From Oopsacas minuta (taxonomy: Eukaryota; Animalia; Porifera): a stretch of 64,000 bases of DNA. The notes beneath the pieces were generated by a model. That model made no database searches, was not told the DNA's origin, and saw only the letters and a program-made list of their open reading frames with translations. The stretch covers positions 124,001 through 188,000 of the forward strand of contig JAKMXF010000222.1 in assembly GCA_024704765.1 (NCBI GenBank), read 5' to 3'. Positions 4,399-41,183 of this stretch are shown in pieces. How positions within the stretch are numbered: the stretch's first letter is position 1; the number at the start of each line of letters is the position of its first letter. Position numbers and translations under genes: made by a program.

Positions 4399-4472
4399 TA
4401 TACAGCCTACTCTCGTTATATCAAAGCTTGAGGGACTGCGATAATTATTTCGATATGAAGGGAGTTGACGGT
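4399..4472. mobile_element. Family B MITE, internally deleted copy
   Basis: tacagcctactctcgttatatcaaagcttgagggactgcgataattatttcgatatgaagggagttgacggta. Confidence 0.65.
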
Positions 4473-4658
4473 AATATCCATCTCTAGAGTAATAATATTA
4501 GTGATGTCACTAAATATTAAAAAGACCGAATTAAATACAATCCAATAGCAGAATTTTCCTATTTATACCCTTGTGCATTTTGAGACACTGTTAATTTGTA
4601 TTGTATTAACAATATATTTAGTTGGTATAACTGTATTAACAGTTGCCATCTGTATAGA

Positions 4659-7600
4659 ATGGCCCAGTATCAACCTAGTGCTTATAGAATTGGATCACTC
4701 GCCCAATCAGTGTTTACGAATAAAATATCAGACATCGATTCTATAAGAAATCCCTTATCTCTACGATCATATCACATACCAGCCAAGAGTATTAAGACAT
4801 TTGAACCTCAGGATTATGAACACAATCCCCCAAATGTTGAGCTAGTTATCAACAAGTCTAATTCTGAAATATGTTTATCTGAGTTAGATTACCCAAGATT
4901 TTCAGGTTAGAATTCAATTATTTCTATATGTTACTTATAAGTATAATAATCCATTCTTTAGATAATATTCAAGATTCAGATTATCCATCAAGCTGTACAT
5001 GCTGGGATGAAATGACGTCACCACGATTAAACGCATACAGCTGTAACACTATTGGATTAATAGATGATGGAAATGATTCGCTGGAGAGTGGGATAGGAGA
5101 AGTTGACTATGAATCTGATGTATTTGAAGCTGGGATGGATGAAAGAGGAGATTTTGAAGAAATAGTAGAAGTATTGAATGATAAACTTGTAATTTCACCA
5201 ACAAGTTCCACTGAAGTATGTTTTATTAATAACCTAGCATAGCGGTTCCCAGCGCAGATCTAGCTATGAAAATGCTTCCCTGGTGCTGTACTTTTTTAAT
5301 ACTTATTTTACATAGACAAAGTTACTATCACGATCCAGCAGCACACAATCATATAATTCTCTAAAATATACTACATCTATTATACTACCATCTCATAAAC
5401 ATGCTGACGTCACAAGACAAATCCCATTCTTCAAACAATCTATGTTCTATAAGTTCCCACCTACTATTAACTTCCCATTACCTAACGAATGTATAGACCA
5501 TATTCCTGCTAACATAGAAACAGTGTTGAAATGGAGGCCTTCTACTATTACGCCTGTAGTTGTGAAGTCGTGTATAGCGAAAGCTGGCTTTAGGTGAGTT
5601 AATCGCTGTGTTAGAACAATAAGAATTTATTTTACGTAAATATTCCTCTCAGGATGTCAAATAGCAAGGACTGGATAGGATACTTCGGAAAACACATGAA
5701 AGCAGCTACATTCAAGAGTATAAAACCATTTCAGAAGGTTAACCATCTACCTGGTAGCTTCCATATGGGTAGGAAGGATAGCATGTGGAAAAGTATTATC
5801 AGAATGCAGGCTAGATTCTCTAAAAAAGAATTTGACTTCGTACCTCAAACATTTATACTTCCGGCAGAGTATGAAGCTTTCAAGCATGATTATGAGAGTA
5901 AAGGTTCTAAAGCTAGATGGATAATGAAGCCGCCTGCTAGCGCTAGAGGTTAGCTAAACTCTTACCCTTCCTATTTGTTATTAGTATTTAACCATGGATG
6001 GTGAATTTGGTTACTCTGCTTGGGTTGTCGCTTGTTTAGAGGGATATTTGTATATAGCATAAATAACAAATCTAGTATCCATGGTTCAATAACTAATAAC
6101 ATATAGGGGTGACTATTTATGATAATAACAAATCTCTATATTTGACATAAATTATTCTATAGGAATTGGTGTACAAATGGTGAAAAAGTTCAATTTAGTT
6201 CCTCGTAACCGTTCAATACTAGTACAGCAGTATATATCTAATCCAATGCTTATTAACGACAGTAAATGTGACCTCCGTATCTACGTGTATATCACATCTA
6301 TGGACCCCCTGCGTCTGTATATTTATGACGATGGACTTGTACGTTTCGCTACTGTAAAATACTCAACCGCGACTAGACACTTATCAAACCGGTTTGTACA
6401 TCTCACTAACTATTCAGTTAACAAGAAAAATAAAAACTTTCAAGCTAACACAGATGAGACTGTGAGACAAGGACATAAATGGGGATTGAAAGCTCTATGG
6501 CCGTATCTAGCTGAAAGGTAAGTTTCCCCTATATATGCTTATTAGATACTAAACCATGGATGGCGGACTACTCGCTTGGTTGGAGGGGGATATCTATATA
6601 CCTTAAAATAAACCAAATCGACCATTCATGGTTAGATATCTAATAACCATATAGTGAGATCATTTTAACCAAAAACTCAATAACTAATTCATTTCATACT
6701 TAATAGTAGTTTTAGCTGCGTATAGTTCTGCTTCTTTAAGGAAAGTTCCTAGTATAAGTCCTACCTCGCTTTGTGATAAACTTATCTGCTTTTCAATTGC
6801 GTTTCTGAGCTCGTCTTTGATAGATTTCGTTTTCTGCCTCGTACTTTTCGGTAGAATATTTAATTTAACTTTTCCTTCATTAATAATACACATTAGCTCC
6901 TCCAATAAATCTACATTGAAAAGATATTTGATAAGATTTGGGTAATTGAACTGTTCCATACTTCTGACTAGATCAATAACTTTGGTGAATGTTTGTTGCT
7001 GGTTATGCCATGCATACTGAATCAGTACAATCAAGCCTCCTAATATAGTTTGATTGGGTACATTAACCAATTTACTGTCAATAATCGCGATTGTTAAGTG
7101 TACCATATATGGTATCAAATCTTCGCTTCTAGTGCGTAGCAATGAGAATGTAGTTTTCCTATTAGAAGCTTTGTAGACAGCTGGTGGGCAATATTGGTAA
7201 TTACAGTGATTTAGAATATCTTTTAGAACTTTTGTAATACCAAATCCTGCTGCATCAATTCCCCCTCTCTGTAGCAAACAGAGATTTCTTTGTATCTCAA
7301 TACGCCATGCAAGTGCTTTGTTCAAATTATCCTTATTACGAGATTCTTCGTACTGTAGCCGTCCTAGAGCTTCAGTGAAGTTTAAGTGGTATGTATGCAT
7401 ATCCGCGAGGAATAAATTTATCCAATGCCATTCTTCTATACCCCATTGTTGTATTATACGTTGAAATTCACTTTTATATGTTTCGCTTGAATGAAGGAAT
7501 TGCCAGCATTTCGACGCAGCCATCAAACACTCACGAATTCTAGCTTCTTGAACTTCAAAACTCTGATTTAAATCGAACTCCATCGTTTCAGGTTTAAGAT

Positions 7601-10057: not shown

Positions 10058-12179
10058 ATGTCAACTCCTACTGCTAGTAAAAAGATAACGAAATTACATG
10101 AATTCGTAGCGAGCACTTCAGAGGTAAGATGTCTTGCTTTAGGTCCTAAACAGTCCCGTGTTATGGTGACAGGGGGAACAGATAACAAGATATCAGTATG
10201 GATAATTGGCCGCCCGAATTTGTTGATGAGTTTTGGCGGGCATACTGCATCAGTTGAGTGTGTGAGATTTCGCGCGGATGAGCAGGTAGTTGCTTCTGGG
10301 AGTGCAAGTGGTACTTTGAAAGTTTACGATTTAGATCAGGGATCTTGTATTCGGACGCTATCTGGGCACAAAGCAGGTAAATGACGTCATGAAACAGTAC
10401 AGTTTGATTCTAAATTAATTCATACACACAATAGGTATTTCTAGTCTTGATTTCCATACTTCTGAGATGCTCCTGGCCTCTGGATCATTAGACACAAGGG
10501 TTAGGGTCTGGGACGTTAGGAAGAAAGGCTGTATATTCTCATACCAGGGTCATACGGGTAAAGTTAATTCACTGCTTTTCAGTCCTGATGGTAAATGGTT
10601 GTCATCAGCTGGAGATGATGGCTATATCAAAATATGGGAATTGAGTTCTGGGAAATTACTGCAAGATTTCTCATCACACGCAGGGCCTATAACGAGTCTA
10701 GAATATCATCCTAATGAGCTACTGTTAGCTTCTGGGTCTCAGGATAGAACAGCTAAGTTCTGGGATCTTGAGCAGTTCCGTATGGTGGATGAGAGTCAAC
10801 CAGAGGCTACTGGGATTAGGAAACTTACTTTTCATCCAAATGGCGATTGTCTCTTCACAGGTAACCATGGATAAAGTTACCATTACACACCTTAGAATTT
10901 CTGTTAATTATAGCTTACTGGTATAATTTCTATAAAATAGGTTCGCAAGAATGTCTCCGTATACATAGTTGGGAGCCATGGTGTTGCTATGAAACAGTAC
11001 CAGCTGGCTGGGGGAAACTAGCAGACATGAGGATTGTATCTGATCAGCTGATTGCAGCGAGTTACAGCCACTCCAGTGTATCCGTATGGACCAGTGACGT
11101 CACTACAATGCGACCATTTAGGAAAGATGACGAGTCAGTCAATTGTATGGAAGAATGTGATAAACTATCTGCCAGTCATCGTGGAATATTCGAGAAGTAT
11201 GATGTCAACAAGAGTCCTACAGATGACATAGCTAGAGAACATTCTCAATCAGATTCTTCTGACCATGAAGATATCAGTAGCAATAATAATCCACAAGCAA
11301 TGGATTTTGGTAAGTTTTCATAATTATTATAACGTATACAGTTAACTCACGTTAGTTCGAAGTAATTATCACGATCCCTTGAGCTTCGATATAATGGGAG
11401 TTATCAGTATGTGTATTTGCATAGGTCCTACTCCTGACGAGTTCAAAGTTGTCAGAGTACATAATTTGAACAAAAACATTTCTAAAGAAATTTTGAAACA
11501 ACCAAAAATTCAACAACCAACACCACAGGACGATTTCAATAGACCTAGGATCCTCAAGGTAGCAAGCGAAGAAGCATTCCCACAAGCAAGGCGCATACAA
11601 ACAGAAAATGACAGTAACGAACGATTAAGAAAAGTATTAGAAGATGGAAATATAAGTGTATTACGTCATCGTTTACAAACCCATAGAGATATAGCTAGAC
11701 ACTGGGACCCTCAAAATCCTATAATATCACTACGTAGAGCTATAAATACAGGAGAACAGGAAATTCTTATACATTTATTAGCCTTATACAACCAGAGGTT
11801 ATCCCTATGGACTCTGAATACGTGTTTAGTTGTACTTCCTGAATTACGTTATTTAATGCAGAGCCATAAATTATTCTTCGTTCAAACAACTGCCAATACT
11901 TTGAGACTTATCTTGAAAACATTCGGCCCTGTAATCGCGATTAATGTCAATCAGCCCCCTCCCACAGGAGCAGGGGTCGATATTTCGCGTGAGGAGCGAT
12001 ACGAAAAATGCTATGACTCATTCGCGCACTTAAATTCCATACGTGACTCTATATCCAACGCGAAATTCGATATGAATACAGCGGAAATAACACAAATATT
12101 CGATGAAGTGAAACAAGCATTTACAGTACTTGATCAACCCGATCTCTTCTATGGAACTCCTCCCATAAATAAGCTCTAG
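10058..12179 (+). CDS. KATNB1: Katanin p80 WD40 subunit B1, multi-exon
   Basis: N-terminal WD40 repeats (VMVTGGTDNKISVWIIGRPNLLMSFGGHT) and a C-terminal con80-like helical domain (LWTLNTCLVVLP, VDISREERYEKC). GT-AG introns present. Confidence 0.9.
11338..11410. mobile_element. Family B MITE, short copy in a KATNB1 intron
   Basis: tacagttaactc...cgaagtaattatcacgatcccttgagcttcgatataatgggagttatcagta. Confidence 0.65.
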
Positions 12180-12337
12180 ACGTGCTATATACTAACCAAC
12201 AACACAGTGTTGATATGTTATTAACTTTCAATTGTTGTTATTATAATTCATTCGTGGATTCTCTCTGTAAGTTAGGAAGGACTTGTAACCGGTAATTTTC
12301 TGTAAATATCAATAAAGTTCAATTACACGTTTACAAT

Positions 12338-12510
12338 TTTAACCACCATGGATGGTGGATTTCGGTTTTTGTTCAGGTCATTTTGAGGCACTCCTCGCTT
12401 GGTTGGAGGGTGTGAGTTCTATATCACAAAAATTAACGAAATTCGCCATCCACCATCCATGGGTAAATAGCTAATAAGCACATAGGGTGGCCATTTCGTC
12501 AAAACAACGT
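12338..12510. mobile_element. Family A element between the convergent KATNB1 and GRASP genes
   Basis: accatggatggtgg ... ccaccatccatggg, core cctcgcttggttggaggg, tail tagggtggccattt. Confidence 0.8.
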
Positions 12511-12646
12511 ATTATGATTTATATGAGTTAATATCACAACATTGAAGTACAGATCTAATAATAATCAAAAGACTACAAAATACAGCAAAAAGCTCCATCA
12601 ACATATTATACTAATTGACCAGTGTATAATAGAGTATGTAACAATG

Positions 12647-13960
12647 TTAATTAACCTGATGAACATCTTCAATAGTAGGAGGGGATACAGCTGTATAGCT
12701 AGGATGAGAGGGTATATGAGAACTTGTAATCGGTTTGAAGGTGGGGTCTGGTTGGTAAACTGGTTGCTGTGTGTGATGAAATGTTCCTTCTGGAATGTCC
12801 AGGTTGAATTCAGTGGGTGGGGCAGTGGGAAGACCAGAGGAGGGGGACACAATAGTTTGGGGTGAGAACTGAGTTGTGAAGAGATTTTTAGCAGAGGCAG
12901 TAGGTATAGGAGATTTCTTATCTACTTCCTGTCTTCTGTTTAGCTGTGTTGTGTCTTGTACAGGAGGGATATAAGGTTCTTGTATAGTGAAATCTTTGAT
13001 GGGAGCATGGATTAATGATTGATCTTGATCTGCTACTACGTTTTTTTCTGATAAAACTTGCTCTTGATTATGAGTTGTAAATATTTCTTGTATTGTTACA
13101 GGTTTTTTCTCAATATTCGTCTGAACATTTTCCTGTATTGTTACAGGTTTCTTCTCAATATTCGTCTGAACATTTTCCTGTATTGTTACAGGTTTCTTCT
13201 CAATATTCGTCTGAACATTTTCTTGTATTTTTCTCTGTGGTGAAGCAGGTAATAACTGGACATTAGCAAACTCACTGACTAGCTTATCTCTCTTCTCTCC
13301 TACTTCAATATCACTTTTACGCGGTGTACTCCTATCTTGTAAATTATTTTCAGAAATATTTGGTATTCGATGTAGATAACCAGTACCTACTCCACACCCT
13401 AAACTGCCTTCACCGCCCCAATTTTGATCTGGGATTATTACGACATCGCGACATTTATCACTAGCCACATTATAAACGAATAGTTTAACTTCTCTTCTAT
13501 TATTCTGCTCTATAAACGTGTCAAATTCCTCTTCCATCATTTCGTAACCAATGATATAATCAGTGTTAGAACATAGCCCAGCCTTTTGGGCTGGTGAATT
13601 GGGATAAACTTCTAAAATATGCCAAATATTATCCGACACATTTTCAAACGAACAGAACCTTATACTCACTCCTATAACACCCTGTCCTCCCCATTTATTG
13701 TTAGGAACAAGTCCTACTTCCCGCCAGGATCTACCTTTAATATTATACACACCCAATTTTACTTCTCTGTCCAAATGTGCTTTCAAGATCTCGATTAGAG
13801 TATCACTTTCTCTATCCAACCTCAATCCTTGTATTGTTACAATAAAATCGAAGTAAGCTTCAAGTTTTGATAAATCAGCTGGGGATTTGTCCTGTACCTT
13901 GAGTACATGGTACCCGTGTGTACCCCCTCCAGGAATAGGGGTTGATTGGTTACCTCCCAT
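12647..13960 (-). CDS. GORASP2: Golgi reassembly-stacking protein (GRASP55/65 family), intronless
   Basis: Myristoylation-type N-terminus MGGNQS, tandem PDZ-like GRASP domain (GYHVLKVQ, WGGQGVIGVSIRFCSF, WGGEGSLGCGVGTGYLHRIP) and a Pro/Ser/Thr-rich tail. Paralog assignment is uncertain. Confidence 0.92.
   Translation of the reverse strand: MGGNQSTPIPGGGTHGYHVLKVQDKSPADLSKLEAYFDFIVTIQGLRLDRESDTLIEILKAHLDREVKLGVYNIKGRSWREVGLVPNNKWGGQGVIGVSIRFCSFENVSDNIWHILEVYPNSPAQKAGLCSNTDYIIGYEMMEEEFDTFIEQNNRREVKLFVYNVASDKCRDVVIIPDQNWGGEGSLGCGVGTGYLHRIPNISENNLQDRSTPRKSDIEVGEKRDKLVSEFANVQLLPASPQRKIQENVQTNIEKKPVTIQENVQTNIEKKPVTIQENVQTNIEKKPVTIQEIFTTHNQEQVLSEKNVVADQDQSLIHAPIKDFTIQEPYIPPVQDTTQLNRRQEVDKKSPIPTASAKNLFTTQFSPQTIVSPSSGLPTAPPTEFNLDIPEGTFHHTQQPVYQPDPTFKPITSSHIPSHPSYTAVSPPTIEDVHQVN
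13085..13232 (-). repeat. 45-bp coding tandem repeat x3 (IQENVQTNIEKKPVT) in the GRASP tail
   Basis: Three near-identical 15-aa units visible in both DNA and protein. Confidence 0.9.
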
Positions 13961-14009
13961 GGGGTCAGTCTATTAGCTCATAACGAATAAAATACGATAG
14001 TAATAAAAT

Positions 14010-14165
14010 TCAACTCCTGTTATATCGATCATATATGAAGTACCCGCTTATATCAAAGTCTGAAATTATACAAATATGGTCCCAAACCGTCAAAGTAACA
14101 TAAATTCCATCGCCTATATCGAAGCAATTATCGCGGTCCCCTTGAGGTTCGATATAACAATTAAA
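14010..14165. mobile_element. Family B MITE between AP2S1 and GRASP
   Basis: caactcctgttatatcga...tggtcccaaaccgtcaaagtaacat...cgcggtccccttgaggttcgatataac. Confidence 0.75.
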
Positions 14166-27632: not shown

Positions 27633-27805
27633 AATGGCTATACAGTGAAAAATTGAGAATGAAGAAACCAATTGGATAGTATAGAGGTAACGTTCATATT
27701 TTTCAATTTTTGATAAAATTCTAAATCGTGATACGTTGTTCCCCATATGATTGTGAAAGGGTAGATAAATGAACACGAATTAATTAACCGATCGCTACGC
27801 TTCAA

Positions 27806-28065
27806 ATATAATAGCCTCTTGGAAGTATTTACTATTCTCTGGAAATTTTAATAGCCTCTAGAAAAATACAATATTCTCTGGGACATTTTACTATAATCTG
27901 GAACATATAATAGCCTCTGGAAAATAAAATAGCTTCTGGAAAATATAATAGCCTCTGGAACATATAAATAGCCTCTGGAAAATAATATAGCCTCTGGAAT
28001 ATATAAGAGCCTCTGAAAATATAATAGCCTCTAAGACAATATAATCATATCCTGGAAACTATAAT
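27806..28065 (+). repeat. Degenerate tandem array of about 19-20-bp units (atataatagcctctggaa)
   Basis: About a dozen imperfect copies of AATAGCCTCTGGAA, in reverse-complement orientation to the array at 28221-28645. Confidence 0.85.
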
Positions 28066-28220
28066 ATTATCCCAGAGAATAGTATCATGTATGCACACAT
28101 GTCATCGAGGAGAATAATGCTCCAAGAGGGTATTATTTCCGACAAAATAGTATTGTTATTATACCCATAGCTAGTAACTTCTCAGTGTTTTTTTCCAAAG
28201 GCCATTAAATTATTCCAGAT

Positions 28221-28645
28221 GAATTATATTATCATAGAGGCTGATATATTATTCCAGAGCAATTATATTATAATAGAGGCTGATATATTATTCCAGAGTA
28301 ATTATATTATAATAGAGGCTGATATATTATTCCAGAGTAATTATATTATAATAGAGGCTGATATATTATTCCAGAGTAATTATATTATAATAGAGGCTGA
28401 TATATTATTCCAGAGTAATTATATTATAATAGAGGCTGATATATTATTCCAGAGTAATTATATTATAATAGAGGCTGATATATTATTCCAGAGCAATTAT
28501 ATTATAATAGAGGCTGATATATTATTCCAGAGCAATTATATTATAATAGAGGCTGATATATTATTCCAGAGCAATTATATTATAATAGAGGCTGATATAT
28601 TATTCCAGAGCAATTATATTATAATAGAGGCTGATATATTATTAG
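28221..28645 (+). repeat. 39-bp minisatellite, about 11 near-perfect copies
   Basis: Unit aattatattataatagaggctgatatattattccagag(c/t), itself a dimer of diverged 19-20-bp subunits. It produces the spurious ORF (NYIIIEADILFQS)n. Confidence 0.95.
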
Positions 28646-29035: not shown

Positions 29036-32000
29036 TTAATCATCTTTGGACAGCTGGGAGTATTGGTGGGTTGGACTCTCAGTCTCCTTTTCTTTTTCAA
29101 CAATATCATCAGATGCGAGAAGACTTTCGTAGGCCTTTCCATCACCACTCTTCTCTGGAGTCTTAGACACAACTGCGTAGCGTTCCTCAGTTGCTACATC
29201 TTGTTTCGCAGTTTCTTTATCTAAGTCCACTTGCTTTGGTGTTTCATAAGCAGGATTAGTTATAGCTGTGTTTTCCTCTTTTGTTAGATCGCCGCTTTCT
29301 TTGGCTTTTGATGGCATCGTGTATTTTCCGGAAATACCACCTGAAGTCTGAGAAGATGGTGGAAGATCGGCTCTTCTTCTGAATATAACTTCTTGTACCT
29401 GAGCATTCCGCAATACAACCAAAAAGAAGAATACCGCACCTGTAGGTGCTGTCAGAAGAATCGTAACCCATTCGATAATCGTTGTTGCTACTAAAGAGGT
29501 AATAAATACGTTTATAATACCGAGTATCCATGGAATGCTTAGAATGGGCAATAGAACAATAATTGCTAATGCTGTTTTCTTTATTGCATCAAACTCATCA
29601 ACTTTATCTCCCTTCGCTCGAATTGTGAGGAATATTTTGATTATTGAAATAATTGCTGCAACAGTTGTTACTACCAGTAAGAGAATGAAAGGCACAAAGA
29701 AACCCCACAATAAACCATTATTATACGATAAGAAGCAATGGTCACCAATAACGACATAATCATTTCGAGATAGACCTACAGCAGCGGTAATAATCACAAT
29801 TGGTAATGGTAGACCCCAGCCTATGATCATCATAGCCCACCAAATTCGTCGTCTCTTGAACACACCAATGTAAAGGATGTATATCATAAATATAGAGATA
29901 GCAAAACTCCATGAAAATACACTCAGCCAGAAATAATGCAATAGGAATGCAACAATGCTACAACCAGCTATCGAGTCTCTCGCTGTTTGGATACCAAAGA
30001 TGAACACACTTGTGGCCAATGCCATCGAGAAAGCATAGTTAAAATAGAGAATGTTGATTTCAACTTTGAAGAACTTTTTCGCAGCTATTAAAAAGAATAT
30101 GATGGAAACAACTAAGAATATGAGTGAGATAGACAGCAATATATAAGATATGATAGAGAGAGCCAGAGTTTCCGCAGGAGTAATAAAGAATTCTTGGGCA
30201 CGAATTAACACACCGAAACTAGTCGTGTGTTCAGGCATGCAAGATGTCAAACCGTTGTCAATTATCTCCGTCCTAATATCAGCAACAAAAGCGTTTGTTA
30301 TTGGATCGATGAACGAACATTCCTGAATGGCTGTATTTATATCTGGTGATTCAAAAATGATATTTGGTGGATTATCCGAAAAGTCTCGCCTCTGGTTTCC
30401 ATTAACAAAGACACTCAGGGCAACGAGGACAGTGTTCAATTCTGGGGTTGTGGTGAGCTCATCTTCTTGGTCTCTTGTAAGAGGACTTGATATTCTAGCA
30501 GTTGCGACACCAACTACGTCTACAAATAGAGGAAATAGCATAATATTCACTATTCTGTGAATATCATATCGTAACAAATGAAGTACTGGGAATAATATTT
30601 CATACTTACCAGTTGATTCAAAGTCGTTCCCAATAGTTACAGACTCTCCTGAGGCGACATCTAAAGAGATATCTTCATTTGGTTGTGGTTCAACCAGCAT
30701 AGCTCTAATTATGATATTCGGGGAATTTATTACTCTGGTCTCTCCAGGGTCTAACTGGTTGACTATATTGTTAGATATGTCCTCCGCGCCTCTTGCTTGT
30801 AATCCTACGGCAGCAGGTACTGAGAGCGGCATCATCACATCAGGATTTACAGGTACATCAGCTGGAAAAATTTATATAATAATATTCAATGTCTATTATA
30901 AATGAAGAAGGCATTGGAAAAGTACAAAATATATTTTATGGATATTAACTCACGTTCTACTACTAATCCTCCAATATCTCCAAGCAAAAGCAGCAAGCTT
31001 TCTGCTTCTCCATCTGTTATATTTCTATTAGGATTAGCAACACTATCAACTATTAAAGCTGCTACATTCAATAATTGACTTGCTTGTTCGGTGCTATTCT
31101 GTACTGAATCAATCCCAATTAGAGACTCTGCTACCTGTAGAAAGAGCAAAATAACAAAACATTCTGTATTTGAGTATTAATGCTAAAGCACACTACTTAC
31201 AGATATTAATCCCAGAGCAACCTCAGGAGTCAATGGTTCATCCAGAGGTATATTATTGATAACGTCTAAAGTTGCTTCCACAGATTGGACTGTTACTATT
31301 ACTGTTGCAGACACGACTCCAGCTGGATTAGTTGCAATACATTGAAATTCGAATATGCCAATGTTCGTAGCATTGAATATAAGATTATATACATCACCAA
31401 AATCAGAATTTTCGAAGAATTGTGTTTGTAGCCCATTATTGTTAACGATATTTACTTCTACATCAGTACCGGTTGCGGTGCAAGGATATTCCAAAAGTGT
31501 TCCCTGTGTCCAAGTAAGGGTTTGCTGTGGAAATGAAACTATAGGGGCTAAATGAAACAGACAAATTTATAGATTTTGAAGTTCACGTAAGACGTATCAG
31601 TCAAGATGGTTTTTTCATACTCGGGTTTTCTTACTATATTTTCATGCTAAGATTGTAAGAATGTGGAAATAACAGATTTCAACTATTTCTATGCAGGAAA
31701 TATATGAAATCCTACATTTTTTCGATCTGAGCAAGAAAATTATTAAGAATAAACAGGAGTCAAACGTATTCAAAAGGAACATACGGTCTATAGGTGTGAC
31801 AGTGACCAACGTAGATGTTGGAGTAGAAATTGAGGGAGTAGGAGTTCCAGTAGTGTTAACTGGGATCACAAAGTCTCTACAATACGGTAGTCTGTTATTG
31901 TAAACCACAGCTGTGTTTAAAATGTAGAAGGATTCAGGGTAAAGGTTGAGAAATATAGTACATAGGTTAGTGTCAGTTTCAATCCTTGCAGCCTAATAGT

Positions 32001-35000
32001 AGGGAAAAAAAGATTTCAAGAAGAACTTACTAAAAAGTTTTCAATTAGTTTGGTTCATAAATAATACACTTACAATGACGTTTGATGTTGAGAAGCTACA
32101 AGTTCTTTGTGCTGCAATGTTATTGTACAAACTATATATAGAGAAACTGCATTGACTCCCAGGGTATGCACCACAGCCATAATAATAGTCATAATTGTAT
32201 GAAGGGGAATTTCCATTATTACTTTCACCATCAAAACAGTCATAATTGTATCCGTAATATGTTACAAATGACAATGGTGCTGGTGGACCGTATGAATCCC
32301 CACAACCTTGAGGGGGATCGAATAGCAATGTATAGTAGACACCTATTGGATAACACAAATTTAAGAATTATTCAATATTAATTCATTTCTAAATTATCTT
32401 AATTTTGAATACTGAACTCACTCAGAGATAGAATTCCATCCAATAAGTAACCATTTGGTAAGTAGATATTTTGTGTGACATTCCGTATAGCATCTATTGA
32501 TAGACTTTGTTCGATTTGATCAATTACATAAGGTGGTATATCGATGGTGACATTCGATGCCAGTGATGGCAGAATAGAATCTATGAGTTGTCTGATGGAA
32601 TCTTCATTCAATGCTTCTCCGTGGTAAAATGTTAAAGAGTGTGAATATGTCAACGAGGAGTGGTATAACGTCACAATTATCAATTGTCTAGAAAGGAAAT
32701 ATACAGACAAAGAGTTATATGTAAATACTAATATTGATACTATTGCAATGCATACCTCGTTAACAAATGTTATAACATCGAAGCTAGAGATTGAATCGAG
32801 TGTACCTTCAATTACAAAGAGAAGATCGTCTCTTAAACTGTTAAACTCATATTCAAATTGTTCAGAGTTAATGTATCCAACAGTCAGAATCACAACACTG
32901 TCCAGAACATCACTGAAATCTTGTAATGATTGAGCTAGAATCGCAGTACAATACACCAGAGTATCAGCACAGAGGGCTAGAAGGGAATACAATACGTGAA
33001 TAATTACACTATATTTCCTGTTAAAGAATACAAATAACTTTCTACTTACATTGACAATATCGTCGTTCAGATTGATTTTGACCTATCAAAGGACAGACCA
33101 GATTGGCAAGGATTGCGTCTACACATAAAGTGGCACCTTCACTCGATGGAATTGCATAACGTAGCTCGTTGAATTTGTTTTCGAATAGGTAAGACTGACT
33201 GAATACTTGAAGAATGGGGCGAATAATGCTCATCCTTTGAGGCTATATTTGGAAAGTGAAATAGTAAGTATACCATCATGTCAAAAGAAATTATATTCTA
33301 AGAATATTTGTACTCTAAAATTACTTACCAAATCTTGTAAAACTTCCAAGTAGCCTATAATATCCTGAATATTGTCATTAAGCAACAGTTCAGTCAGTAC
33401 ACAAGTGATATTTTCTTCTAACCCAGGAATATTCAATACCTCAGAGATTGTGTAAAGTATTTGTTCTACCCCAGTGTCATTTCCAACGATTTCCCCAACG
33501 ATTTCTAGTCCTAGATCTGTTCCATCCCAGTAATATCCTTACTAGATTTCTAGCTCTTACTTCAGGGTACATACTACAAATAACATGGATATATAATAAA
33601 ATAGTTGCGACCGGTCAAAGTGGATCTTTCAATCCTAAACTAATACACACCTGAAGTTCTGGTGTAGCTCATAGAATAAGTCATCAATGAGGTTAAATAT
33701 CTCTGGATAGTATGGCTGTAGGACTTCATCATTAACTCCACCCAAATATGTCAAAGCAGGAGATAGAGTTGCATTCAGTAATTGTCTCAATGCAGCTGGA
33801 TCACCTTCAGCTATGTCATCTGAATATTAGATTTGTAAATGGTGATGTTTTTTGATTGTATACAACATTTCAATATTTATGACACTTACCTACAAAGTCT
33901 GAAACGCTCGTGCCAATAGTAGCTACAGTCTCTGTTGTATCTAGAATGTACTCAGTACCTTCTATTACATCATATGTGACAACAGTACGAATAGCTTGAT
34001 CCTCTGTGCATTCATTTGTAACGCATGTTATTGGTTGAATTAAGAAGTCTCGAACAATATGGAAGTCTATTATTGTAATCGATCCCATTTCTCAAGATTT
34101 CAATCGATTCAGGATAAAGTGATAGGAATACTGAACAAAGATTCGTGGGTGTATATATTGTTGCATTCTAAAATGTACAATAAGTTAGTGTACTCTGATG
34201 TAATTATGAAAGAAAAATTGCAGTCGACATCTGCTATCTCGAGCATTTCATATTCTTCCCGAAAAATTCCAGCCTTTACGTGACTATTTTGAAATTCTCA
34301 TATTCACAAATTGTAACCATACCACTGTCCTCAAACCGTACCCCGCAGCTATGAACATATGTCCTACCACCTGGAACTATGGGCTACAGGGCCATAGCAC
34401 GCTCGTGAAAACCTGTCAGGCTGTGGCAGGACGGCCGGACAAAAGGCTACGACCATGTATTGCAAATAGTTACAGTATTGACACATAACTTAGTTTTTGT
34501 TCAGCTTCCACGAATCGAGTAAAATACAATTTGTTTGCATTAATTGGAGGCCATAAATTAACACGAACATTGGCTATCTGGAATATATTTTGATTTCCCT
34601 TGAAGTTTCGGGTTCCCTGATGTTGACTATAGTTGTTTCATAAATAATATACTTACAATGACGTTTGATGTTGAGAAGCTACAAGTTCTTTGTGCTGCAA
34701 TGTTATCGTACAAACTGTATATAGAGAAACTGCATTGACTCCCAGGGTATGCACCACAGCCATAATAATAGTCATAATTGTATGAAGGGGAATTTCCATT
34801 ATTACTTTCACCATCAAAACAGTCATAATTGTATCCGTAATATGTTACAAATGATAATGGTGCTGGTGGACCGTATGAATCTCCACAACCTTGAGGGGGA
34901 TCGAATAGCAATGTATAGTAGACACCTATTGGATAACACAAATTTAAGAATTATTTATTGATTTTATTCCAATATTTTATTCGTAATATTTTTTAAATAT

Positions 35001-38000
35001 ACTGAACTCACTCAGAGATAGAATTCCATCCAATAAGTAACCATTTGGTAAGTAGATGATGTTTTGTGTGACATTCCGTATAGCATCTATTGACAGACTT
35101 TGTTCGATTTGATCAATCACATAAGGTGGTATATCAATGGTGACATTCGATGCCAGTGATGGCAGAATAGAATCTATGTGTTGTCTGATGGAATCTTCAT
35201 TCAATGCTTCTCGTGGTAAAATGTTAAAGAGTGTGAATATGTCAACGAGGAGTGGTATAACGTCACAATTATCAATTGTCTAGAAAGGGAATATACAGAC
35301 AAAGAGTTATATGTAAATACTAATATTGATACTATTGCAATGCATACCTCGTTAACAAATGTTATAACATCGAAGCTAGAGATTGAATCGAGTGTACCTT
35401 CAATTACAAAGAGAAGATCGTCTCTTAAACTGTTAAACTCATATTCAAATTGTTCAGAGTTAATGTATCCACCAGTCAGAATCACAACACTGTCCAGAAC
35501 ATCACTGAAATCTTGTAATGATTGAGCTAGAATCGCAGTACAATACACCAGAGTATCAGCACAGAGGGCTAGAAGGGAATACAATACGTGAATAACTACA
35601 CTATATTTCCTGTTATAAATTGCAAATAACTTTCTACCTACATTGACAATATCGTCGTTCATATGGAGGTTGATCTATCAAAGGACAGACCAGATTGGCA
35701 AGGATTGCGTCTACACATAAAGTAGCACCTTCACTCGATGGAATTGCATAACGTAGCTCGTTGAATTTGTTTTCGAATAGGTAAGATTGACTGAATACTT
35801 GAAGAATGGGGCGAATAATGCTCATCCTTTGAGGCTATATTTGGAAAGTGAAATAGTAAGTATACCATCATGTCAAAAGAAATTATATTCTAAGAATATT
35901 TGTACTCTAAAATTACTCACCAAATCTTGTAAAACTTCCAAGTAGCCTATAATATCCTGAATATTGTCATTAAGCAACAGTTCAGTCAGTATACAAGTGA
36001 TATTTTCTTCTAACCCAGGAATATTCAATACGTCAGAGATTGTGTAAAGTATTTGTTCTACCCCAGTGTCATTTCCAACGATTTCCCCAACGATTTCTAG
36101 TCCTAGATCTGCTCCATCCAGTAATACCCTTACTAGATTTCTAGCTCTTTCTTCAGGGTATATACTACAAATAATATGGATAAATGATAAATTTGTTTGG
36201 TAACCGGTCAAAGTGAATATTTCAATCCTAAACTAATACACACCTGAAGTTCTGGTGTAGCTCATAGAATAAGTCATCAATGAGGTTAAATATCTCTGGA
36301 TAGTATGGCTGTAGGACTTCATCATTAACTCCACCCAAATATGTCAAAGCAGGAGATAGAGTTGCATTCAGTAATTGTCTCAATGCAGCTGGATCACCTT
36401 CAGCTATGTCATCTGAATATTAGATTTGTAAATGGTGATGTTTTTTGATTGTATACAACATTTCAATATTTATGACACTTACCTACAAAGTCTGAAACGC
36501 TTGTACCAATAGTAGCTACAGTCTCTGTTGTATCTAGAATGTACTCAGTACCTTCTATTACATCATATGTAACAACAGTACGAATAGCTTGATCCTCTGT
36601 GCATTCATTTGTAACGCATGTTATTGGTTGAATTAAGAAGTCTCGACAATATGGAAGTCTATTATTGTAATCGATCCCATTTCTCAAGATTTCAATCGAT
36701 TCAGGATAAAGTGATAGGAATACTGAACAAAGATTCGTGCGTGTATATATTGTTGCATTCTGAAAAGTACAATAAATTCGAGTAGTTAGATGTATAACGT
36801 ATCAGATATTTAAAGACAATATACTTACAATGACGTTTGATGTTGAGAAACTACAAGTTCTTTGTGCTGCAATGTTATCGTACAAACTGTATATGGAGAA
36901 ACTGCATTGAGCCCCAGGGTATGCACCACAGCCATAATAATAGTCATAATTGTATGAAGGGGAATTTCCATTATTACTTTCACCATCAAAACAGTCATAA
37001 TTGTATCCGTAATATGTTACAAATGACAGTGGTGCTGGTGGACCGTATGAATCCCCACAACCTTGAGGGGGATCGAATAGCAATGTATAGTAGACACCTA
37101 TTGGATAACACAAATTTAAGAATTATTTATTGATTTTATTCCAATATTTTATTCGTAATATTTTTTAAATATACTGAACTCACTCAGAGATAGAATTCCA
37201 TCCAATAAGTAACCATTTGGTAAGTAGATGATGTTTTGTGTGACATTCCGTATAGCATCTATTGACAGACTTTGTTCGATTTGATCAATCACATAAGGTG
37301 GTATATCAATGGTGACATTCGATGCCAGTGATGGCAGAATAGAATCTATGAGTTGTCTGATGGAATCTTCATTCAATGCTTCTGGTGGTAAAATGTTAAA
37401 GAGTGTGAATATGTCAACGAGGAGTGGTATAACGTCACAATTATCAATTGTCTAGAAAGGGAATATACAGACAAAGAGTTATATGTAAATACTAATATTG
37501 ATACTATTGCAATGCATACCTCGTTAACAAATGTTATAACATCGAAGCTAGAGATTGAATCGAGTGTACCTTCAATTACAAAGAGAAGATCGTCTCTTAA
37601 ACTGTTAAACTCATATTCAAATTGTTCAGAGTTAATGTATCCACCAGTCAGAATCACAACACTGTCCAGAACATCACTGAAATCTTGTAATGATTGAGCT
37701 AGAATCGCAGTACAATACACCAGAGTATCAGCACAGAGGGCTAGAAGGGAATACAATACGTGAATAACTACACTATATTTCCTGTTATAAATTACAAATA
37801 ACTTTCTACCTACATTGACAATATCGTCGTTCATATGGAGGTTGATCTATCAAAGGACAGACCAGATTGGCAAGGATTGCGTCTACACATAAAGTAGCAC
37901 CTTCACTCGATGGAATTGCATAACGTAGCTCGTTGAATTTGTTTTCGAATAGGTAAGACTGACTGAATACTTGAAGAATGGGGCGAATAATGCTCATCCT

Positions 38001-41000
38001 TTGAGGCTATATTTGGAAAGTGAAATAGTAAGTATACCATCATGTCAAAAGAAATTATATTCTAAGAATATTCGTACTCTAAAATTACTCACCAAATCTT
38101 GTAAAACTTCCAAGTAGCCTATAATATCCTGAATATTGTCATTAAGCAACAGTTCAGTCAGTATACAAGTGATATTTTCTTCTAACCCAGGAATATTCAA
38201 TACGTCAGAGATTGTGTAAAGTATTTGTTCTACCCCAGTGTCATTTCCAAGGAATTCCCCAACGATTTCTAGTCCTAGATCTGCTCCATCCAGTAATATC
38301 CTTACTAGATTTCTAGCTCTTTCTTCAGGGTATATACTACAAATAATATGGATAAATGATAAATTTGTTTGGTAACCGGTCAAAGTGAATATTTCAATCC
38401 TAAACTAATACACACCTGAAGTTCTGGTGTAGCTCATAGAATAAGTCATCAATGAGGTTAAATATCTCTGGATAGTATGGCTGTAGGACTTCATCATTAA
38501 CTCCACCCAAATATGTCAAAGCAGGAGATAGAGTTGCATTCAGTAATTGTCTCAATGCAGCTGGATCACCTTCAGCTATGTCATCTGAATATTAGATTTG
38601 TAAATGGTGATGTTTTTTGATTGTATACAACATTTCAATATTTATGACACTTACCTACAAAGTCTGAAACGCTTGTACCAATAGTAGCTACAGTCTCTGT
38701 TGTATCTAGAATGTACTCAGTACCTTCTATTACATCATATGTGACAACAGTACGAATAGCTTGATCCTCTGTGCATTCATTTGTAACGCATGTTATTGGT
38801 TGAATTAAGAAGTCTCGACAATATGGAAGTCTATTATTGTAATCAATCCCATTTCTCAAGATTTCAATCGATTCAGGATAAAGTGATAGGAATACTGAAC
38901 AAAGATTCGTGGGTGTATATATTGTTGCATCCTAAAATGTACAATAAATTCGAGTAGTTAGATGTATAACGTATCAGATATTTAAAGACAATATACTTAC
39001 AATGACGTTTGATGTTGAGAAACTACAAGTTCTTTGTGCTGCAATGTTATCGTACAAACTGTATATGGAGAAACTGCATTGAGCCCCAGGGTATGCACCA
39101 CAGCCATAATTGTATGAAGGGGAACTTCCATTATTACTTTCACCATCAAAACAGTCATAATTGTATCCGTAATATGTTACAAATGATAATGGTGCTGGTG
39201 GACCGTATGAATCTCCACAACCTTGAGGGGGATCGAATAGCAATGTATAGTAGACACCTATTGGATAACACAAATTTAAGAATTATTTATTGATTTTATT
39301 CCAATATTTTATTCGTAATATTTTTTAAATATACTGAACTCACTCAGAGATAGAATTCCATCCAATAAGTACCATTTGGTAAGTAGATGATGTTTTGTGT
39401 GACATTCCGTATAGCATCTATTGACAGACTTTGTTCGATTTGATCAATCACATAAGGTGGTATATCAATGGTGACATTCGATGCCAGTGATGGCAGAATA
39501 GAATCTATGAGTTGTCTGATGGAATCTTCATTCAATGCTTCTGGTGGTAAAATGTTAAAGAGTGTGAATATGTCAACGAGGAGTGGTATAACGTCACAAT
39601 TATCAATTGTCTAGAAAGGGAATATACAGACAAAGAGTTATATGTAAATACTAATATTGATACTATTGCAATGCATACCTCGTTAACAAATGTTATAACA
39701 TCGAAGCTAGAGATTGAATCGAGTGTACCTTCAATTACAAAGAGAAGATCGTCTCTTAAACTGTTAAACTCATATTCAAATTTTTCAGAGTTAATGTATC
39801 CAACAGTCAGAATCACAACACTGTCCAGAACATCACTGAAATCTTGTAATGATTGAGCTAGAATCGCAGTACAATACACCAGAGTATCAGCACAGAGGGC
39901 TAGAAGGGGATACAATACGTGAATAACTACACTATATTTCCTGTTATAGAATACAAATAGCTTTCTACTTACATTGACAATATCGTCGTTCAGATTGATT
40001 TTGACCTATCAAAGGACAGACCAGATTGGCAAGGACTGCGTCTACACATAAAGTAGCACCTTCACTCGATGGAATTGCATAACGTAGCTCGTTGAATTTG
40101 TTTTCGAATAGGTAAGATTGACTGAATACTTGAAGAATGGGGCGAATAATGCTCATCCTTTGAGGCTATATTTGGAAAGTGAAATAGTAAGTATACCATC
40201 ATGTCAAAAGAAATTATATTCTAAGAATATTTGTACTCTAAAATTACTCACCAAATCTTGTAAAACTTCCAAGTAGCCTATAATATCCTGAATATTGTCA
40301 TTAAGCAACAGTTCAGTCAGTATACAAGTGATATTTTCTTCTAACCCAGGAATATTCAATACGTCAGAGATTGTGTAAAGTATTTGTTCTACCCCAGTGT
40401 CATTTCCAAGGATTTCCCCAACGATTTCTAGTCCTAGATCTGCTCCATCCAGTAATATCCTTACTAGATTTCTAGCTCTTTCTTCAGGGTACATACTACA
40501 AATAATATGGATAAATGATAAATTTGTTTGGTGACCGGTCAAAGTGAATATTTCAATCCTAAACTAGTACACACCTGAAGTTCTGGTGTAGCTCATAGAA
40601 TAGGTCATCAATGAGGTTAAATATCTCTGGATAGTATGGCTGTAGGACTTCATCATTAACTCCACCCAAATATGTCAAAGCAGGAGATAGAGTTGCATTC
40701 AGCAGCTCTGTGAATGCACCTGATTCACCTTCAGCTATGTCATCTGGATATTTAATTTGTAAATAATCATATATTTTGTTTGCAAGCAACAATTCCATAT
40801 TTATGACACTTACCTATAAATTCCCTAACGTTTACACCAATGTTGGCTACAGTCTCTATGGTATCCTTAACGTTCTGTGCTCTATCTATTGCGGCATTAC
40901 GGATGGGAACGCGATCTGCATATTCTGTACATTCGTTTGAGAAACAAAATTCTACTTCTAAAAAAGCGAAATTATAATTATACTAACATATGGTAATTTT

Positions 41001-41183
41001 GTCTACTATTTTTTCTGGAATTTTCAAGCAATTTTGAATTTATTCACCAACAACAAACATTATCAGATTATTTTAAAGTAAGCAACATATGAAAAATATA
41101 ATTATTTAATATAACTCACGTCCAGAACAAATGAATGGCGCTAGGCCAATAAACAATAGTAACAAGTGTTTAAAAACCTGCAT
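29036..41183 (-). CDS. Adhesion GPCR: signal peptide, 4 glypican-like repeats, Thr/Pro stalk, Ig domain, GAIN/GPS, 7TM; repeat 4 carries frameshifts as assembled
   Basis: Manual exon chaining with GT-AG sites. Exon 41183-41120 gives signal peptide MQVFKHLLLLFIGLAPFICSG; four multi-exon modules follow; exon 31992-31785; Ig exon 31547-31201 (YPCTATG...FQCIATNPAG); GPS-like CSF...CMPEHTTSFGVL; then seven hydrophobic helices. The traced junctions join in frame except for 1-nt indels noted under findings. Confidence 0.8.
32074..40957 (-). repeat. Four tandem copies of a roughly 2.17-kb multi-exon module (approx. M1 40957-39001, M2 38931-36829, M3 36759-34657, M4 34167-32074)
   Basis: Homologous ORF fragments recur with a 2172-bp offset between M2 and M3, and both exons and introns are near-identical. 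Confidence 0.95.

Follow-up and report, generated by a model that had tools for sequence, protein, structure and literature searches.

RESULTS

Exon chain at the locus

[quoted passage not shown] A chain of 34 exons with GT-AG introns runs along its minus strand from an ATG at 41183 to a stop codon at 29036 and is most likely one O. minuta gene, encoding an adhesion-class G-protein-coupled receptor (GPCR) of ~2,970 residues. The encoded order is a signal peptide, four Cys-rich helical units of ~547 residues, a Thr/Pro (T/P)-rich stalk, an immunoglobulin (Ig) domain, a GAIN/GPS region, and a seven-transmembrane (7TM) domain of the adhesion class. The four units lie head to tail at 32074 to 40957; each is 2.16 to 2.59 kb long and has seven exons (A to G), and they are 96 to 100% identical. 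With three extra single bases in unit 4 left out, the chain comprises 8,922 nt and has one stop codon, the terminal one.

Transcript evidence came from run X4, one of four from the assembly's own sample, which behaves as RNA-seq: the depth of exon words was 10^4 to 10^5 times that of a private intron. Joints (CT..AC, that is, GT..AG on the gene strand) were found in X4 at every intra-unit intron and at one junction from exon G to exon A, which spans a 489-nt intron in the genome. In GenBank, the locus carries the gene models P0010 and P0001.

A preliminary description of the locus, made by reading the sequence, had already chained exons from the signal peptide to the 7TM domain. That chain is real, but unit 4 is out of frame as assembled and unit 1 has a one-base deletion. 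The end of the gene had been taken as a single exon; this "exon" is interrupted by a 90-nt GT-AG intron (30609-30520), which is spliced out in P0001, and the related contig L004 has no insertion there. The F/G donor had been placed at a GGT, whereas the RNA joints use the strong GTGAGT site (32422 in unit 4), 30 nt further on. Every motif that had been quoted from the units is present, except that unit 1 lacks the NLC...RLPYC part. The features of the chain are as follows.

41120-41183, minus strand: exon 1, start codon and signal peptide (MQVFKHLLLLFIGLAPFICSG); read directly and from the exon chain, identical to the N terminus of P0010.
40814-40957, minus strand: exon 2, a truncated A-type exon that opens domain 1 at C-x3-C (EFCFSNEC) and lacks the NLC..PYC half; from the exon chain, P0010, and the family alignment.
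39001-40743, minus strand: unit 1, exons B to G; from the exon chain.
36829-38931, minus strand: unit 2, exons A to G, intact, 547 codons; corresponds to P0010 residues 511-1057.
34657-36759, minus strand: unit 3, exons A to G, intact, 547 codons; from the exon chain.
32074-34167, minus strand: unit 4, exons A to G, a 546-codon open reading frame (ORF) once the three extra bases are omitted; from the exon chain, with RNA joints at its six internal introns.
31785-31992, minus strand: stalk exon, with NLC...RLPYCRDF closing domain 4 and then a T/P-rich, mucin-like linker; from the exon chain, with the same arrangement after the L004 modules.
31201-31547, minus strand: exon of the Ig (I-set-like) domain; from AlphaFold2 (AF2) and Foldseek.
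30954-31134, minus strand: exon with the helical start of the presumed GAIN domain; from the exon chain, helices modeled with moderate confidence, and language-model neighbors.
30610-30861, minus strand: exon T1, GAIN region; from the exon chain, with the 90-nt intron downstream.
29036-30519, minus strand: exon T2, the remaining GAIN region, GPS, 7TM domain, cytoplasmic tail, and stop codon; from the exon chain and Pfam and PDB matches.
30194-30244, minus strand: GPS motif and tethered agonist (Stachel), SCMPEHTTSFGVLIRAQ; aligned to ADGRD1 C..HLTNFAILMQV.
29453-30163, minus strand: 7TM domain, Pfam 7tm_2 (E=1e-27; profile positions 3-242 of 250), with seven hydrophobic segments.

The receptor part is of the adhesion class

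The 7TM domain belongs to class B and lies nearer to adhesion than to secretin receptors, as judged from its Pfam match and its ranking of PDB chains: the best matches were to ADGRD1 (6e-28) and then to E1, L3, L4, E5, and F1 (to 1e-15), with the CRF1R/secretin class at 6e-13. The alignment with ADGRD1 starts at the GPS and Stachel (tsCmpeHTTSFGVLIRA in O. minuta, svCrctHLTNFAILMQV in ADGRD1), which shows that the tethered agonist is conserved. The residue at position -1 of the presumed cleavage site is T in the O. minuta GPS and not L (HT/T versus HL/T).

The Ig exon is confidently predicted to fold as an I-set Ig domain. Its AF2 model had a predicted local distance difference test (pLDDT) score of ~80 over residues 1-90, and Foldseek matched this model to Ig domains of titin, perlecan, LAR, and NCAM (TM score by target, 0.6 to 0.77); the Pfam I-set match reached only E=0.22. 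For the GAIN region, AF2 gave a pLDDT of 50 to 65 over the helical start and below 30 over the beta part, and the Pfam GPS and GAIN models were silent on the receptor. The language-model neighbors of the region minus the 7TM domain were GPS, GAIN, and Ig clusters of adhesion GPCRs (scores of 0.72 to 0.77), which we take as a lead only.

With its 7tm_2 domain, its T-x-F-x-V-L Stachel, an Ig domain beside the presumed GAIN domain, and a predicted long modular N terminus, the receptor resembles the adhesion GPCRs that combine Ig and GAIN domains (ADGRF, ADGRA). It also resembles those of the sponge Amphimedon queenslandica, which are sponge specific, have varied N termini, and often have a degenerate or undetected GPS (PMC4302439). 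It differs from described adhesion GPCRs in its distal ectodomain module, which is known from none of them.

The repeat module and its relatives

A fifth, partial copy of the module (NLC...RLPYCRDF) opens the stalk exon. Since C-x3-C opens the mature O. minuta protein and this NLC...PYC segment completes the last module, the structural domain runs from C-x3-C through RTCSF and NLC to PYC, and the protein has four complete domains. Fourteen cysteines are invariant in a seven-sequence alignment of the family, and one extra pair occurs only in O. minuta and in the related contig L003. The ectodomain contains 37 N-glycosylation sequons.

Searched against 1.84 billion representative proteins, exon A matched only its own gene model, seven short exon-like fragments, and one bacterial repeat protein, which we dismissed as spurious. 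The contigs from which the short fragments came carry the same module exons. One of them, L003, has two module variants that are ~50% identical to O. minuta. Another, L004 (a 541-kb contig from another assembly), has three variants that are 30 to 42% identical, and these are followed on the same strand by an Ig exon, a GAIN region with canonical SCETMHLTSFGVL, and a 7tm_2 ORF that is 54% identical to the O. minuta receptor. The GPS of this orthologue is canonical (SCETMHLTSFGVLVRAQ; HLTSFGVL). The order modules, stalk, Ig, GAIN, and 7TM, as first read from the O. minuta sequence, is thus repeated in an independent genome, and the architecture is conserved. Behind every L004 module come an NLC...C segment and a T/P-rich linker, in this order, and only then the next C-x3-C. 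The family has not been described before; its distribution is narrow, and we have met it in no more than a few contigs of the glass-sponge type.

The arrangement of the exons in these two contigs has features of its own. In L003, besides module exons in tandem, there are long inverted copies of them that are nearly identical (5381-7402 on the plus strand and 12122-14143 on the minus strand); the array may be truly palindromic, or long-read assembly may have produced it as an artifact. In L004, a separate NLC..C exon with a T/P-rich linker (4445-4561 and 6801-6980) ends each module, and two module types (x and y) alternate as a repeated superunit ahead of the receptor part.

On the three-module protein, PF07176 and PF14875 passed their cutoffs only by the addition of three 12- to 14-bit hits, and we regard both as spurious. 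PIP49_N (the Cys-rich N terminus of FAM69) and DUF1400 fell on P0010 residues 219-284 and 653-743, in units 1 and 2, where the gathering score was reached only as a sum; the lone PDB match, to the esterase 3d7r (E=1.4), lies on the same stretch of exons B and C as DUF1400. Look-alikes of one exon and one module in the ESM Atlas were uninformative.

Comparison of the module with the glypican core

The preliminary description had likened the module to the glypican core (PF01153; human GPC1, Drosophila Dally-like), an extracellular domain that is mostly helical, spans ~450 to 550 residues, and has 14 conserved cysteines. With 63 residues of human GPC1 as bait, we obtained twenty fragments that carry the Pfam Glypican domain and are 82 to 100% identical to the bait. 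Our GPC1 reference consists of exons 2 to 9, the unique GT-AG model from a 19-kb mammalian locus to which one of these fragments led, and agrees with GenBank glypican-1 proteins.

The top hhalign alignment of the sponge family with this GPC1 joined C-x9-C, C-x3-C-x6-C, and an LDSxVxxT block sixteen residues after the last of these cysteines. This is exactly the block that the preliminary description had singled out, and its spacings are present in the rebuilt mammalian protein itself. The alignment scored 28.4 (P of 0.008 to 0.0095). None of 100 composition-preserving shuffles reached this score (mean, 14.9; standard deviation, 2.7; maximum, 24.9), and a Gumbel fit to them gave a P value near 1e-3. 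Smith-Waterman comparison with GPC1 gave z = 3.7 both in O. minuta and in L003, a level reached by 2 of 300 shuffles; a semiglobal pairwise alignment with GPC1 was discarded as meaningless. The extended alignment held 8 to 9 colinear Cys pairs in the correspondence first proposed from the sequence, namely, ITC with YTC, NITC with LDC, the five-Cys cluster, TIDNC with VIQGC, and QGC with TLC.

Two introns also coincide in position and phase. The sponge A/B intron is in phase 1, and the Asp codon at which it falls is aligned with the Asp codon that GPC1 intron 2/3 splits, also in phase 1. The sponge E/F intron is in phase 0 and lies four codons ahead of an aligned Cys, exactly as does GPC1 intron 5/6. 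When GPC1 was shuffled 300 times with its intron indices kept, one exact coincidence arose in 3 alignments and two in none. A bias toward proto-splice sites could raise this chance rate a few fold but not a hundredfold. Four other sponge introns and three GPC1 introns are unmatched.

A third line of comparison is the disulfide map. According to the ECOD paper, the Cys-rich domain (CRD) of glypicans has the pattern CC*CC*C-x8/9-C-x2,3-C*C-x3-C-x6-C*C*C plus a C191-C343 pair, with the disulfides C1-C3, C4-C7, C5-C10, C8-C12, and C9-C11. Two glypican cysteines have no counterpart in the sponge module, namely, C4 (second C of TCC) and C7 (second C of CxxC); this published map joins them in one disulfide, as had been stated when the likeness was proposed. 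The 12 other glypican cysteines have one-to-one, colinear sponge counterparts with identical local spacing. The invariant cysteines found only in the sponge module, those of NEC and RTCSF, can be paired with each other, a putative assignment that would account for all 14. The disulfides predicted for the sponge domain are NLC with ITC, PYC with LVC, LC(VDA) with VYC, RYC with DCFDG, SLC with QGCG, NITC with DNC, and NEC with RTCSF.

Several results weigh against a glypican reading. The Pfam Glypican profile, the check first suggested for it, gave no match at E<=10 on exons, intact modules, or the three-module protein, and neither phmmer nor a profile of the D/E-exon family found a glypican among the PDB chains. 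The homology probability given by hhalign was just 4 to 5%, and the divergent L004 variants had no pairwise signal with GPC1 (z of 0.3 to 1.2). At least 8 colinear Cys pairs arose in 8 of 120 shuffles (7%), and we give the Cys count little weight. An AF2 model of the module had a pLDDT of 34 and was unusable, with helical secondary structure over residues 29-400; the best alignment to be had for it comprised 13 rows, since the relatives are known only as unannotated genomic exons, whose fragments MAFFT stacks on one another; its Foldseek matches (F-BAR, ABC-transporter, and generic long helices) were disregarded for this reason. The ectodomain has no glycosylphosphatidylinositol (GPI) signal, no SG cluster for heparan sulfate (HS) attachment, and no RxxR furin site. 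Finally, the C-x8/9-C ... C-x3-C-x6-C signature is common to the whole FZ-CRD superfamily (ECOD paper), and the stretch that bears it gave a weak Pfam Fz match (E=4.8).

The first alternative to be weighed is that the receptor is as described and its module is a lineage-specific, Cys-rich helical domain whose likeness to glypicans reflects chance, convergence, or the generic FZ-CRD signature. The negative searches and the superfamily-wide Cys pattern speak for it, as does the fact that the glypican family was chosen by the author of the preliminary description after sight of the sequence. It leaves unexplained, however, a local score above that of every shuffle, two exact intron coincidences that the controls never produced, and the loss of exactly one partner pair. 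The size and Cys order of the module fit the helical insertions and the C191-C343-type pair of glypicans, and within the FZ-CRD superfamily only glypicans have such a size and such long helical insertions (ECOD paper). We regard this alternative as unlikely. Even taken together, an unrelated lineage-specific domain and a kinship at the superfamily level only seem to us less likely than a homology of the glypican type, which we consider probable.

It is nevertheless outside the glypican family as defined, since it lacks a profile match, a GPI anchor, heparan sulfate sites, and a furin site, and "glypican-like" is the most that can be claimed for it. The glypican-fold reading with which the analysis began thus stands in part: the profile block, the intron coincidences, and the loss of the C4-C7 partners favor it, and the Pfam and PDB searches do not.

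Unit 4, assembly indels, and the public annotation

As assembled, unit 4 loses its frame in the middle of exon A, regains it early in exon F, and contains 32 stop codons. The frameshifts stem from single extra bases at three positions (34053, 33526, and 32619), all within homopolymers of 1 to 3 nt. Without them, unit 4 has all of its cysteines, and its changes relative to unit 3 (11 synonymous and 14 nonsynonymous) show a synonymous excess. In unit 1, a 1-nt deletion near 39373 disrupts the conserved tail of exon F (...GYLLDGILSLS) unless a weak GGT donor is used; the relatives keep the tail GYLLDGILSL. The O. minuta genome is a PacBio assembly polished by Pilon with Illumina reads, a procedure that leaves homopolymer errors in near-identical repeats, and the unit 4 indels are likelier to be assembly errors than real.

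Were the insertions real, unit 4 would be a decaying pseudomodule, and the message would either carry premature stops or skip the unit. The extra bases do stand in the assembly sequence. They are also compatible with the contig-level reads, which are indecisive on this point because bubble popping retains the majority copy of a repeat, and a G3-to-stalk join would stay in frame, as the end of G3 and the start of the stalk exon are both in phase 0. However, unit 4 alleles made up 18 to 36% of the RNA depth at ten sites that distinguish unit 4 from the other units. A single transcript with four units should give this share to each of them, which speaks against both the skipping of unit 4 and a pair of independently expressed genes. 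The 546 codons are otherwise stop free, with synonymous changes in excess, the indels are single bases in short homopolymers of 99%-identical repeats in a long-read assembly polished with short reads, and a DNA contig that carries the unit 4 single-nucleotide polymorphisms lacks the base at 34053. We consider a pseudomodule improbable.

The GenBank annotation cuts the locus in two, patching the frameshifts by intron read-through, and the split results from the indels in units 1 and 4. P0010 ("hypothetical protein LOD99_678"; 1,613 amino acids) comprises units 1 to 3 and owes its last nine codons to read-through of the intron that follows unit 3. P0001 ("G-protein coupled receptor"; 1,343 amino acids), a BRAKER/Augustus model built with RNA-seq hints, begins at an ATG just past the first unit 4 frameshift, patches the other two with read-through junk, and links unit 4 to the stalk, Ig, GAIN, and 7TM exons. 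That GenBank holds two genes here counts against a single receptor gene, as does the fact that the G4-to-stalk joint (32074/31992) is not among the RNA joints seen, the reads compared having started at 32000, 8 nt short of it.

Two genes, the first for a secreted protein of three modules (LOD99_678) and the second for a GPCR that starts inside unit 4, would agree with the annotation, with the unit 4 stops in the assembly, and with a set of RNA joints (from reads compared from 32000) that includes neither G4 to stalk nor a unit-specific G3 to A4, but we judge them very improbable, as P0010 needs nine intron codons for its end and P0001 an internal ATG and patched frameshifts for its start, the G-to-A joint across the 489-nt intron is present in RNA, unit 4 is intact but for three homopolymer bases and has about a quarter of the RNA depth like the other units, and the first product would end in an incomplete domain without the closing NLC..PYC. 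From the frame-compatible chain, the model P0001, and the comparative evidence, we infer that one transcript runs through unit 4 to the 7TM domain and links the repeats to it.

The intron between exon G of unit 3 and exon A of unit 4 contains a private 420-bp insertion (34220-34640). No tRNA was found in it, and it is single copy within the window.

DISCUSSION

Taken as a whole, the locus is probably best explained as a single adhesion GPCR gene whose ectodomain carries four remote relatives of the glypican core within the FZ-CRD superfamily. The novelty lies in the ectodomain module; the receptor that bears it is of a known type, the adhesion GPCR.

Glypicans assist morphogens (Wnt, Hedgehog, BMP, FGF) or guidance receptors. 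To our knowledge, they are known only as GPI-anchored, single-domain heparan sulfate proteoglycans without a signaling part of their own. The sponge protein is anchored by a 7TM domain instead and has neither the GPI anchor nor the heparan sulfate SG cluster nor the furin site. Its module shares with the glypican core a putative set of 12 colinear cysteines and, in position and phase, two introns. It differs in the absence of a Pfam match, in the exchange of the C4-C7 pair for a new one, in its four tandem copies in place of one, and in the position of the two-Cys N-terminal segment, which stands at the C-terminal end of the domain. More broadly, the FZ-CRD superfamily (an ECOD H-group that includes the Frizzled and Smoothened CRDs, the N-terminal domain of NPC1, the folate and riboflavin binding proteins, and the glypicans) has C-x8/9-C ... 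C-x3-C-x6-C on helices, as the module does, but a compact CRD is a quarter of the size of the module and lacks its long helical insertions of the glypican type; no superfamily profile matched the module significantly.

The linkers of L004 and the ends of the O. minuta protein support the view that the domain is circularly permuted relative to glypican, as expected from tandem duplication and the trimming of both ends. By this route, the N-terminal segment of glypican (C1 and C2) would have come to lie at the C-terminal end of each domain, while the ancestral C4-C7 disulfide would have been lost and one new pair gained. If the homology holds, the locus offers a clear-cut natural example of a circular permutation that arose through tandem duplication.

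By analogy with the adhesion GPCR family, from which both ligand binding and the mode of signaling are inferred here, the glypican-like array on its mucin-like stalk may bind an extracellular partner, such as a ligand that is part of the matrix, lies on a cell surface, or is lipid modified. Such binding, or a pull, would act via the stalk on the presumed GAIN domain, expose the tethered agonist TSFGVLI, and so activate the 7TM domain and G proteins. A partner of the Wnt type is unlikely in O. minuta, since Wnt, Wntless, and Dishevelled are reported to be absent from it (PMC10280926). We suggest, tentatively, that the glypican core began or was reused as a mobile ectodomain module and that a permuted array of it was wired to G-protein signaling in Wnt-less glass sponges.

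The survey of A. queenslandica adhesion GPCRs found HRM, laminin, EGF, cadherin-type, and other domains and no glypican-like module, hexactinellids being outside its scope (PMC4302439). Neither in this sponge survey nor in a recent catalogue of GPCR architectures, in which glypican is unmentioned, did we find a glypican-type module on a GPCR, in agreement with the view, taken when the locus was first read, that the architecture is undescribed. If the homology is true, this would be the first sign of the glypican fold as a mobile module and its first direct coupling to a 7TM domain, and a morphogen coreceptor fold would have gained a signaling output of its own. It raises a testable question, namely, what the ligands of glypican-type domains are where Wnt is absent. 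Should the glypican link fail, the sponge adhesion GPCR would still carry an ectodomain family that is new and restricted to its lineage. In practice, the public O. minuta annotation splits and truncates this gene owing to probable assembly indels.

Other features of the window

Two repeat arrays lie just 3' of the receptor stop codon. The looser one, at 27804 to 28066, has periods of 19, 39, and 58 nt. The other, at 28209 to 28643, is a 39-nt tandem repeat of 11.2 copies with 98% matches, one frame of which is an ORF of repeated NYIIIEADILFQS.

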